64,000 nucleotides of DNA, from sequence record NC_048668.1; one strand, 5' to 3'. Both the position numbers and the translations under genes were made by a program. How positions within the stretch are numbered: the first letter of the stretch is position 1; the number at the start of each line of letters is the position of its first letter. Shown piece by piece: positions 23,986-55,346 of this stretch. The notes under the pieces were generated by a model that had not been told where the DNA came from, made no database searches, and saw nothing but the letters and a program-made list of their open reading frames with translations.

Positions 23986-25263
23986 TTGGGTGTTTATCTG
24001 TTAAATCCGGACTATGACAGGGATATCGCAGCTCTGCCTCGTCCTCCAATTATCCTCAATGATATCGACCCGGCGCATTATGAAGGTACTGATCCAGTCA
24101 AAGAACTGACCATGACCGAATATAGCGACGACTTCATTGAGACATTACCGGCGTGTGAGTGTGGCCACACCCATGGTCGGTATAATTCATCGAACGACCC
24201 AAGTATCCCTAACACGGTATGTCCGAAATGTCAGACTGAAGTGATGAGCCCAATCGATCGAGGGTTTAAATCTTCTGTGTGGCTGAGAGCACCTAACGGT
24301 GTTCGTGCGTTCATCCGTATCAATGCGTTGGTCATGTTGCTGAAGAACTTCACCCAGGAGAACTTCTCGGCAATTGAATGGCTCTGTAACACCAAATATA
24401 AGCCAACCAACGATACCAGTGCCACGTTCCGTCGGTTCAAAGAACTGAACATCCCTCGTGGCTATAATCACTTTATCGAGAACTTCGATGACATCCTGGG
24501 AGCGATGGTGGATAGTAAGATATTCAAGCCATCTGCTAACCGTAACGATGCGTTGGTGTATTTCGATAAGTTCAGGGATCTCCTGTTCCCAACTGTCCTC
24601 CCACTACCATCTCGCCGGTCTATCATCACGGAGCTTAGTAACAAAACTCGGTTCTGTGCTGAAGGCTATGCAGATGTCGTCGATGCTGCACGAGCTATTT
24701 ACAGCTTGGTCGGTAAAGATGAACCGCGTTATCAAGTGACTAAGGAATATCACGTATTCCGAGCACTGATGATGTTGGTGAAGTATCGGGAATATATCGA
24801 CAAGAACATCCTGGGTAAGAAAGAAGGCTGGTTCCGTAAACAGATCTATGGATCTCGTACCGGGCCAACTTATCGTGGCGTAGTAACGTCTATCGCGGGA
24901 TCTCACGACTATGAAGAAATGCATATGCCGTGGGGGATTGCGTTAGGGGTTTATCACACCCACTTGATCGGAAAGTTAGTTCGTCGCGGATTCACCATCC
25001 AAGACTCTGAGGATCTACTGATCTCTTCAGTAGGGCGTTATAATCCACTGATCTCCACACTGCTGGATGAGCTGATTGACGAATCTCCGTTTACGACAAT
25101 TAGTGGTAAACGTGGACTGCCTCAGTTGCTGGGTCGAAATCCAACGTTGAACTTACGTTCGATTCAGAACCTGTTTGTCACCAAAATCAAAAGGGACGTG
25201 CACGACAATACTATCGGCCTATCGCTGCTAGTGCTGAAGGCTCCGAACTGTGACTTCGACGGT
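23986..25263 (+). CDS. non-virion RNAP beta' N-terminal subunit (phiKZ gp55-like), exon 1
   Basis: Zn finger CECG...CPKC, RNPTL, ends NCDFDG at the 5' splice site. Confidence 0.88.
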
Positions 25264-25559
25264 AGAAGTAACCCAACTAAGTTGCCGTCTTAAAACTCCT
25301 TTAACTGCTGGGAACTCTTGCTAGGTAGATTGGCTACAACGTAACTGGAAACGGTAAGCGTGAATGCTTGAAAACAATCTAATAGAGACAATCAGCATCC
25401 AAGCTCCTGTAAAATGGAGAAGGTTCAACGACTATCGAAAGCACGTAACACGGATGTGGTAAACGTAGTGAGTAGAGTAGGGGAAACCCGAAACGGGGAG
25501 CACTTGAACGATTCAAGTGAAGATATAGTCTGTTAAGTACTCGGTGCATTTAGCCGAGG
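25264..25559 (+). mobile_element. group I intron without ORF (296 nt)
   Basis: P1 GACGGT/GCCGTC with U-G at splice site; P AACTGCTGGGAA, Q AATCAGCATCC, R GTTCAACGACTA, S AAGATATAGTC; ends in G; splicing restores DFDGD. Confidence 0.9.
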
Positions 25560-52706: not shown

Positions 52707-52774
52707 TCCATAAGCCGGCTGGGGAAACCTGGCCGGTCTATGTTGTTTATGTACAATTAAGAGGAAACACCACC

Positions 52775-52934
52775 ATGCCTAGTACCAGTAAGAAACAAGA
52801 GCAATTCATGGCAGTCGCTGCCCACGACAAAGAGTTCGCTGAAGAAGCAGGCATTCCCCAGAAGGTTGCTAAAGAATTCCATAACGCCGGATAAGCGTAA
52901 GAAGAACAAGAAAGCGATCTTGGCAAAACGTTGA
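52775..52934 (+). CDS. small protein MPSTSKKQ...; +1 frameshift near 52888
   Basis: SD GAGGA; MPSTSKKQEQFMAVAAHDKEFAEEAGIPQKVAKEF. Confidence 0.65.
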
Positions 52935-53072
52935 TTTAGATCTTTTTTTACGCAACAAGTTTAAGTATGTAGAAGCTGCATCAAGTAATCATTTAGTTCA
53001 ATTAACTCCAGGGTCGATTGTCGGTAACTAAGTGAGATTCAGCTACAAGCGGGGATGGATCCCCACTAAGTA

Positions 53073-53234
53073 TTGGAGAGCTTTAAGGGTACGATCTCAA
53101 TCGTCCGGGTTGTGGAACAACTTCCGCACACTAGTGCGTTGGTTTAGGGTTCGACTCCCTACCGGAATGCCTTAAAGGTAGCGCATGATAAATGCGAGCA
53201 ACTAACACGAGGCGACATTACGCGCCTACTCCAA
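53073..53234 (+). ncRNA. multi-stem RNA with nested tRNA-like domain
   Basis: TTGGAG/CTCCAA, CTTTAAGG/CCTTAAAG, TCCGG/CCGGA, T arm TAGGG-TTCGACT-CCCTA. Confidence 0.5.
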
Positions 53235-53249
53235 TCAAGACGAATTCCT

Positions 53250-53334
53250 GGTAGGTTACTCAAGCGGCAACGAGAACAGACTGTAAATCTGTTGCCTTCG
53301 GGCTTCGATGGTTCGAGTCCATCACCTACCACCA
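53250..53334 (+). tRNA. trnY: tRNA-Tyr(GTA)
   Basis: acceptor GGTAGGT/ACCTACC, anticodon arm ACAGA-CTGTAAA-TCTGT, long variable arm, TTCGAGT T loop, encoded ACCA. Confidence 0.95.
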
Positions 53335-53341
53335 AAACAAT

Positions 53342-53420
53342 GAACCGAGTAGCTCAACTGAATAGAGCACCGTCCCGCTAAGACGGAGGTTAGAGGTTTA
53401 AGTCCTTTCTCTGGTTCCCA
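53342..53420 (+). tRNA. atypical/pseudo tRNA: Arg-like body, GCT anticodon
   Basis: D arm AGCTCAACTGAATAGAGC, arm CCGTC-CCGCTAA-GACGG, T loop TTTAAGT, bulged acceptor, CCA. Confidence 0.65.
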
Positions 53421-53426
53421 AACAAC

Positions 53427-53590
53427 GACACTGATCTCAAGAAGATCGGCAGCCTTACCCAACCGTGTCGCGGCGATCGCCAGCAATCGGTATTTAGTGC
53501 ACGGTACGTAGACAAGCCTTTGAGCGAAGTTCCGCGTCCCGAGCCGTCGGCAGCCCATAAGCCTCAGTGAAATTCTGAGGGGTGTCACCA
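53427..53590 (+). ncRNA. tRNA-mimic RNA (164 nt) ending ACCA
   Basis: GACACT/GGTGTC stacked on CCTCAG-TGAAATT-CTGAGG. Confidence 0.6.
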
Positions 53591-53680
53591 AAGATGTCCT
53601 CATTGCAGAGGGAGGTTGATTGTAGTCAGCCTGTTGTGAAACGAATCTGCAGTGGGGACGCCTTCCCTTTCTAAAGTTTT

Positions 53681-53769
53681 ATCGAGATAGTCTACTTAAA
53701 CCTAGTGAGGAATTCGACGGCGGATACGTCCGTAAGACTGCGTAGGTTCGATCCCTACTCTCGATCCGA
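53681..53769 (+). ncRNA. tRNA-mimic RNA, three-way type
   Basis: ATCGAGA/TCTCGAT, AGTCT/AGACT, GTAGG-TTCGATC-CCTAC. Confidence 0.55.
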
Positions 53770-53782
53770 TTTAAAAGAACAA

Positions 53783-53909
53783 TGACGCCTGCACGTAAAA
53801 AGCAAACTGCGCCAGCTGGGCGCGGTGGGGGCTAAGTGCCATGAACCATGCGGCGAGATCGCGGCGAAGGTATAAGATAGCCAGGTGCGATTCCTGGGGG
53901 CGTCACCCA
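53783..53909 (+). ncRNA. tRNA-mimic RNA (127 nt) ending CCCA
   Basis: TGACGCCT/GGGCGTCA, CCAGG-TGCGATT-CCTGG. Confidence 0.6.
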
Positions 53910-53911
53910 AT

Positions 53912-53988
53912 TAGGTACGTAAGTCTCAAGTGGCCGCATTCATCTGCCCGCTGCCTAAAGACTTTGTGGAATGGATTCCGCGTACCTA
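53912..53988 (+). ncRNA. tRNA-mimic RNA, three-way type
   Basis: TAGGTAC/GTACCTA, AAGTCT/AGACTT, GTGGA-ATGGAT-TCCGC. Confidence 0.5.
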
Positions 53989-54024
53989 AAAACCAGTAAG
54001 TTAAACTAATAGGACGATTCTACG

Positions 54025-54869: not shown

Positions 54870-55346
54870 ATGAAATTCATACTGGCATTGAATCCTAAAG
54901 ATCCGGCAATTAAAGGTTACGAATCAGCTCTGCTTAAGATGATCCAGATTATGGATAAACGAGAAGCTACTTACTGGAAAGAGTCAGCTAACTTAGATAT
55001 CCTTAGTCGCGAGATGTAGTGTAAAACCTTAGAGGAACGTTGGGTAGATGATACTCAAATACTAATGCTCCTTGTGAGAGGTAATCCTGTAGGTTTCGTT
55101 GAGTACACGACCGCGGTAGTTAACGCTAGTTCTAAGTGGCTTTCTATATGTTATCTGTACGTACAACGAGAGTACAGAGGGTTTGGATATGGATCTGCAC
55201 TAGTTGATCAAGTAAGGAACTTTGCCAAGATCCAACAAGTAGATCAGTTATCACTTTCAGTAAAGTCCAGAAATAAACGAGCCATTAAGTTTTACAAGAG
55301 ATACGGTTTCTCGGAACAGACTAAGTACTTCTGTATGAAACCTTAA
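54870..55346 (+). pseudogene. GNAT acetyltransferase with in-frame TAG at 55017-55019
   Basis: LYVQREYRGFGYGSAL motif; same frame on both sides of the TAG. Confidence 0.6.

Follow-up and report, generated by a model that had tools for sequence, protein, structure and literature searches.

The 64,000-nucleotide stretch of DNA analyzed here (record NC_048668.1, hereafter the window) shows 100% identity to Serratia phage vB_SmaM_2050HW, a jumbo phage of the genus Moabitevirus with a 276-kb genome that encodes the tubulin PhuZ. A terminator-like hairpin (52714-52737) precedes a stretch of about 1.1 kb that is poor in open reading frames and houses, on the plus strand, the element under study (53427-53590). 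The element lies in a tRNA island, directly behind two tRNA or tRNA-like genes. The second of these has C33 and no long variable arm, while its relatives have U33 and its counterpart in phage Moabite is called by ARAGORN; it is doubtful that the 2050HW gene is a working serine tRNA. The parts of the element, its immediate neighbors and a second, related element are as follows.

53250-53334, plus strand: tRNA-Tyr, the sole ARAGORN call in the window
53343-53416, plus strand: tRNA-Ser(GCU)-like gene (Rfam tRNA model, 41.4 bits; no ARAGORN call)
53420-53426, plus strand: 5' leader or spacer AAACAAC, between the CCA of the tRNA-Ser-like gene and G+1
53427-53432, plus strand: 5' strand of the acceptor-like stem P1, GACACU, pairing with 53581-53586
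53433-53447, plus strand: hairpin P2 at the D-arm position, GAUCU/CAAGA/AGAUC, 5 bp in the MFE fold
53448-53454, plus strand: 5' strand of P3, GGCAGCC, conserved in sequence (MFE fold, alignment)
53455-53548, plus strand: interior of P3, 94 nt, GC-rich, specific to the 2050HW group
53549-53555, plus strand: 3' strand of P3, GGCAGCC, forming 3 bp, an A.A mismatch and 3 bp with 53448-53454
53556-53561, plus strand: J3/4, CAUAAG, at the variable-loop position (family consensus UUnAGAA)
53562-53580, plus strand: T arm with a 6-bp stem (CCUCAG 53562-53567, CUGAGG 53575-53580) and the loop UGAAAUU (53568-53574)
53581-53586, plus strand: 3' strand of P1, GGUGUC (direct reading, MFE fold, covariation)
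53587-53590, plus strand: 3' tail A-C-C-A, with A at 53587 and CCA at 53588-53590 (direct reading)
53783-53909, plus strand: distant paralogue, UGACGCCU paired with GGGCGUCA, tail CCCA

The island contains further tRNA-like folds at 53102-53169, 53681-53770 and 53910-53990. The first has a canonical T arm (GGGUUCGACUCCC); its best Rfam match, mascRNA-menRNA, stays below threshold (30.1 versus 42.5 bits), and a 12-nt deletion runs across its T loop in Moabite. In the second, a terminal stem of 7 bp (AUCGAGA/UCUCGAU) goes with a canonical T arm (GUAGG-UUCGAUC-CCUAC); it is called by neither ARAGORN nor Rfam, and in Moabite about 310 additional bases lie between it and the 53783 element. The tRNA-Tyr slot changes among near-identical phages, which recalls segB in the T4 tRNA cluster. 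In phage Totoro (locus L005, 1924-2529), the 3' half of tRNA-Tyr is replaced by an HNH nuclease gene; phage Kodama (L002, ~1933-2040) has an additional tRNA-like sequence with a long insert, and phage Haymo (L003, 1849-1928) has an 8-nt deletion in the anticodon region, the gene being annotated as tRNA-Asn. Moabite (L004, 2013-2102) carries about 90 additional bases 5' of the family member, absent from the 2050HW group, which form a stable hairpin (CCCGAA-GACG-UUCGGG) and a second stem-loop. Outside the island, a GNAT acetyltransferase gene (54870-55346) has an in-frame TAG at codon 50 (55017-55019), where phage BUCT660 has GAG (Glu). The 2050HW gene is either a pseudogene or affected by a sequencing error; a suppressor tRNA is not evident in the tRNA island of 2050HW.

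A sequence-only reading of the window had proposed an RNA at 53427-53590 with tRNA-like ends. The terminal stem, the T-arm hairpin and the ACCA that it described can be read directly from the sequence and amount to 12 stacked pairs. An unconstrained MFE fold contains these stems, the hairpin at 53433-53447, and a GGCAGCC/GGCAGCC stem that closes the 94-nt interior. The stability of this fold is not unusual, with a z-score of only -1.19 for the window copy. Scanning the window for the bare pattern (a hairpin of 6 bp and a 7-nt loop, closed by a 6-nt stem and followed by NCCA) gave four occurrences versus 2.2 expected from dinucleotide shuffles. As this count is close to the shuffle level, the window by itself does not rise above chance; the comparative evidence does.

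Homologues of 119-220 nt are present in the tRNA islands of phages from six genera (Moabitevirus, Wellingtonvirus, Erskinevirus, Machinavirus, Seoulvirus, and Agricanvirus), always without annotation and mostly in the gaps separating tRNA genes. An identical or nearly identical element is found in BUCT660, Kodama, Haymo, Totoro, and vB_ParM-25. Moabite and Yaphecito, with flanks about 95% identical to the window, encode at this position a 126-nt version with the same ends and another body, and with a C-G pair in the T stem where 2050HW has A-U. A stretch of Erwinia phage Kwan shows 84.5% identity to the 5' half of the Moabite version, whose 3' end has matches in gaps without annotation within the tRNA clusters of Asesino, phiEaH2, Huxley, pSal-SNUABM-04, pEa_SNUABM_29, and SPAsTU. 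Additional members, namely pEa_SNUABM_11, AH06 and several uncultured contigs, came from further BLAST searches and from two IMG/VR pattern scans. With a simple descriptor, 15 distinct sequences were extracted, 119-220 nt long; ACAAU or ACAAC stands 5' of every one of them and N-C-C 3'. The Moabiteviruses encode two copies per genome and the other five genera one. The copy of phage AH06 has protein genes on both sides and no adjoining tRNA.

We built a covariance model (R1) from these 15 homologues, using a plain MAFFT alignment with 148 positions and 21 pairs. The family design consists of a 7-bp acceptor, a 4-bp P2 with an invariant GA, P3, a 5-bp T stem with the loop UGNRAUU, and N-C-C. RNAalifold independently predicts P1, P2, the T arm and the stem that closes P3. 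It also pairs the nucleotide following the 6-bp stem with the one located between T stem and 3' strand, so that 10 of the 15 aligned sequences have the canonical design, a 7-bp acceptor stacked on a 5-bp T stem. In the window copy the stack is divided 6+6 because the corresponding G joins P2 and the T stem gains one pair, giving 12 layers either way. P2 of 2050HW is the shortest of the family and carries the invariant GA just 5' of its 3' strand (G53441-A53442). The 2050HW copy is thus somewhat atypical: its P2 is minimal, its P3 large, its stack divided 6+6 and its ACCA complete.

R1 retrieves all known members at 53-149 bits, 14 independent relatives scoring between 93 and 149. The window copy scores 70.3 bits (E-value 3.4e-14, model positions 1-148), a value that is partly circular since this copy is one of the 15 training sequences; phage Simmy50, which is outside the training set, scores 53 bits. 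Under stricter filters, which could miss weak matches, R1 gave no match on the whole records of nine further jumbo phages with PhuZ (Centimanus, PhiEaH1, Eowyn, pEa_SNUABM_54, Proteus phage 10, pEa_SNUABM_37, RisingSun, Goslar, and Raoultella P1). A narrow 3'-end pattern found 39 loci in 185,579 bacterial and archaeal genomes, none of which passes R1, and, as the pattern is narrow, this is weak evidence against a cellular homologue. The same pattern found 63 loci in metagenomes, of which five pass R1, all from the same phage groups; two of the metagenome loci, from human-gut assemblies, gave no match. A PhuZ-based search of IMG/VR found no relatives, and we found no paper in the literature describing this RNA family. 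Comparison of a 1,201-base stretch with public runs identified 20 that contain part of it, all apparently DNA, and no run recorded as RNA covered the element. Two wastewater RNA-seq assemblies span 52900-53321 and 53582-53767 and not the element; two RNA runs with the same species label as the best DNA runs contained no phage reads. As a side observation, Kwan has a second unannotated tRNA-like sequence 3' of the family member (L006, ~1800-1877). Its terminal stem has 8 bp (UCAACGGU/ACCGUUGA), UGGG-UUAGAAU-CCCA forms a T-arm-like hairpin, and the tail is CCC; it has no R1 match.

Pair statistics were computed on a model-based alignment of 17 sequences. Standard pairs fill 95.5% of the cells, compared to 36-50% when the partners are slid by one to three columns, and two-sided compensatory changes occur at 12 of the 21 pairs. 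For four of five measures, none of 500 shuffles attains the observed value. We should note that there are fewer independent compensatory events than the cell counts imply, because the member phages are related to each other. All four pairs of P2 covary, with three pair types each. The acceptor is wholly switched to GGUACC/GGUACC in Machinavirus, and the sixth pair of P1 is U-G, U-A or C-G in relatives. The T stem has three covarying pairs. In this stem, the window copy has A-U where most relatives have C-G, a compensatory difference. The least certain pairing is P3, which is conserved in sequence with slight covariation and may therefore be a sequence motif rather than a helix. Its interior varies in sequence and, from about 30 to 130 nt, in length, and large differences in the P2 and P3 interiors occur even between close relatives. 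The G-U pairs in P1 and P3 indicate that the RNA is read from the plus strand.

Several positions are invariant in all 17 sequences: G+1, the GA of P2, the T-loop pattern U-G-.-.-A-.-U, and C74-C75. The window copy carries these family features at G53441-A53442, in the loop UGAAAUU (53568-53574) and in ACC (53587-53589). The discriminator N73 is A in 15 sequences, G in one and U in one (a purine in 16 of 17), and at position -1, 13 sequences have U and four have C. The claim that the RNA ends in ACCA thus holds for the window copy and not for the family: the terminal A76 is encoded only in the 2050HW group, whereas in the relatives N-C-C is followed by C or U. We conclude that 53427-53590 is a member of a conserved, structured and previously unannotated family of RNAs with tRNA-like ends in enterobacterial jumbo phages.

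The same data bear on two readings that would deny the element such a status. According to the first, it is a neutral relic: a tRNA gene in decay, altered by drift and acquired insertions and serving no function. The island does hold several odd tRNA-like sequences and shows visible turnover (the HNH gene of Totoro, the insert of Kodama, the 8-nt and 12-nt deletions of Haymo and Moabite), and the interiors of P2 and P3 differ greatly among close relatives. However, compensatory changes keep the helices across six genera, several unpaired nucleotides are invariant, and each genome has a single copy at an equivalent place; decay would have left neither the 12-layer stack nor the GA and the RCC tail intact. 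A relic is therefore unlikely. The second reading concerns an open reading frame on the minus strand (53322-53603, 93 aa). It exists in the window, and the minus strand is also open in several relatives, but ten of the 17 members have stops in every frame and the lengths of close relatives differ by non-multiples of three. The frame also runs antisense through the tRNA-Ser-like gene, and the substitutions in the element are compensatory for RNA pairing. That it encodes a protein is hardly conceivable.

The element at 53783-53909 had been proposed to form a paralogous pair with 53427-53590, and this proposal is supported. It contains P2 (GCAC/GUGC) with a long insert and the T arm CCAGG-UGCGAUU-CCUGG. 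R1, which was trained without it, matches 53783-53908 at 27.5 bits (E-value 2e-4 over 203 kb, 1.3e-6 locally) and aligns the acceptor, the 4-bp P2 and the T arm. The two elements share CGCGGCGA and ATAAG, as was originally seen, while the loop that they have in common needs correction from TGRRATT to TGNRATT, since the second copy carries TGCGATT. The 53783 copy was found in all Moabitevirus loci examined. On these sequence grounds, the 53783 element is best regarded as a distant paralogue.

In many respects the family resembles tRNA: a 7-bp acceptor stacks on a 5-bp T stem (6+6 in the window), there is a G+1, a purine discriminator and C74-C75, the T loop has the U54...A58 positions, and the four-way junction and the tandem placement with tRNA spacers are shared as well. 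Unlike tRNA, it lacks an anticodon arm, a conserved anticodon, the U8/N9 linker and the G18G19 D loop, and it has a length of 119-220 nt. Its T loop is of the T-loop type with G55 and a variable position 56, where true tRNAs have U55-C56. P2, with its invariant GA, and P3, with its freely varying interior, take the places of the D arm and the anticodon arm. The initial description of tRNA-like ends without an anticodon arm is borne out by the gene finders: ARAGORN calls only tRNA-Tyr, and no Rfam family matches the element, either at the gathering threshold or at an E-value of up to 10 on the island, nor seven relatives at an E-value of up to 1. The tRNA family RF00005, considered as an identity for 53427-53590, gave no match at an E-value of up to 10 and ARAGORN was silent, with the same outcome for the seven relatives.

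A decoding tRNA with an intron or an expanded arm would fit the cloverleaf-like four-way layout and the location in a tRNA island, and the earlier reading had named an intron whose removal yields a normal tRNA as the finding that would overturn it. We did not find this. There is no conserved anticodon loop, the P3 interior ranges from about 30 to 130 nt, and neither ARAGORN nor the Rfam tRNA model reports any of the members tested. The Rfam group I intron model RF00028 detects the intron at 25240-25549 in the window (58 bits), which served as a positive control, and nothing in the island. A decoding tRNA is thus very unlikely.

The resemblance to tmRNA that had been pointed out concerns the architecture, an acceptor/T-arm module framing a large non-tRNA body in a (here predicted) RNase P substrate. 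In this sense it is real, and the discriminator A agrees with it. The resemblance ends there. The third pair is C53429-G53584 instead of G3-U70 and is C-G or U-A throughout the family; there is no pseudoknot ring, and no conserved tag frame, since the interior varies. Neither ARAGORN nor Rfam reports a tmRNA. We consider a reduced tmRNA or another RNA of trans-translation extremely improbable.

YrlA, the Y RNA-like RNA of bacteria, is likewise non-coding, carries a tRNA-like module and occurs in phages too. In YrlA, the RNA ends build the Ro-binding stem and not an acceptor. The Rfam YrlA model (RF02553) gave no match on the element, and its sole match in the island spans the two tRNA genes at 24.8 bits (threshold 69). 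The 276-kb genome has no match to the Ro domain (TROVE, PF05731), which argues against a Y RNA-like role. Separately, partial YrlA matches below the same threshold of 69 were observed in the Agricanvirus phages Simmy50 (L045, 2896-2959; 44.5 bits) and AH06 (L027, 2783-2847; 37.3 bits), about 1.3 kb downstream of the family member.

The element is placed in the array as a tRNA gene would be: a CCA precedes it, followed by six to eight A-rich bases and G+1. The family spacer consensus, ACAAU|G, equals the spacer between the true tRNA genes of the same islands. Along with these A-rich spacers, which it shares with the adjoining tRNA genes, the family keeps the 12-layer stack of acceptor and T arm, the purine-C-C tail, G+1 and U or C at position -1. 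The sequence determinants of RNase P (stacked helix of fixed length, T loop, RCC tail, U/C at -1) are present. The RCC motif and N-1 matter to bacterial RNase P, the purine-C-C tail pairing with its RNA, and the enzyme also cuts non-tRNA and phage RNAs (PMC12710915). Because the most strictly conserved features are those that RNase P uses, we infer that host RNase P releases the RNA by cutting at G53427, which is predicted to be its mature 5' end.

The following route can be proposed. The element would be transcribed together with the tRNA island and cut by host RNase P at G53427, the enzyme reading the acceptor/T-arm stack and the RCC tail. Host exonucleases would then trim the 3' end, and in relatives without an encoded A the host CCA-adding enzyme could complete it. 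The product, presumably not a decoder, would accumulate as a stable RNA of about 164 nt. The A76 missing in relatives may either be added by the host CCA-adding enzyme or be dispensable; nearly all true tRNAs of the same islands, unlike the family, encode NCCA. Pfam searches of the 2050HW genome gave no match for a CCA-adding enzyme, RtcB, an RNA ligase or Ro/TROVE, and processing would thus fall to the host. The tRNAs of phage phiKZ require the non-virion RNA polymerase and formation of the phage nucleus (PMC12571901), and by analogy the RNA of the element would be a middle or late product. The predicted processing route is well grounded in sequence, and the element is probably a stable, tRNA-mimicking non-coding RNA, cut from the tRNA transcript by host RNase P with 3' trimming.

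Conservation of RNase P signals could also have another cause. The fold might be a cis-acting processing handle that only directs RNase P cuts to mature or stabilize the adjoining RNAs, the excised piece being a by-product. The head-to-tail arrangement with tRNAs (spacers of 6-8 nt) fits this reading, as does the fact that the best-conserved features are those read by RNase P. On the other hand, the adjoining tRNAs have their own RNase P determinants, the invariant GA of P2 and the GGCAGCC/GCAGCC core are superfluous for a cut site, and the AH06 copy sits between protein genes with no tRNA alongside. A mere handle is accordingly an improbable explanation, and we favor a stable RNA product.

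The closest known systems are RNA C and RNA D of phage T4, which are stable, derive from the T4 tRNA region and have a function that is still unknown (PMC3014915, PMC9697503). RNA C (species 1, rnaC; 139 nt) and RNA D (119 nt) lie at the end of the phage tRNA cluster in the same transcription unit. A T arm and a short terminal stem are common to RNA C and the element, and RNA C differs from the family in its canonical UUCGAAU loop and in lacking a CC tail. Sequence comparison shows no similarity, R1 gave no match on the T4 locus even at an E-value of up to 10, and host and phage lineages are unrelated. The family is analogous, not homologous, to T4 RNA C.

Regarding a possible role, the conserved core (GA loop, GGCAGCC/GCAGCC, J3/4, and T loop) probably binds a protein, although this is speculative. 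A conserved core combined with a freely varying P3 interior suggests protein binding over antisense action, and the best antisense complementarity to the phage's own genome is 12-13 nt (E-value 0.4-0.5), which is at chance level. The partner could be a host factor that recognizes the acceptor/T-arm ends of tRNAs, the RNA then acting as a decoy, or a phage protein, for which it might serve as a scaffold; both are speculative. A more specific proposal sees a counter-defense or takeover RNA, a tRNA mimic matured by the tRNA machinery of the host itself, that titrates or misdirects a host factor recognizing the acceptor/T-arm ends of tRNAs (candidates are a tRNA-targeting immune nuclease, a nucleotidyltransferase toxin, and a tRNA-handling enzyme) or that is aminoacylated for non-ribosomal use. 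We put this forward only tentatively, with the odds clearly against it.

Since phage tRNA islands have been annotated with tRNA finders alone, every record examined leaves the RNA blank or mislabels it as a small hypothetical protein. T4 RNA C and D have posed the same question of function since the 1970s, and the many natural variants of the present family, its minimal member of 119 nt and its clear core make that question tractable. It also connects to current work on phage tRNAs as responses to tRNA-cleaving host defenses. Giant nucleus-forming phages appear to keep under selection an RNA with borrowed tRNA maturation signals, for a use other than decoding.
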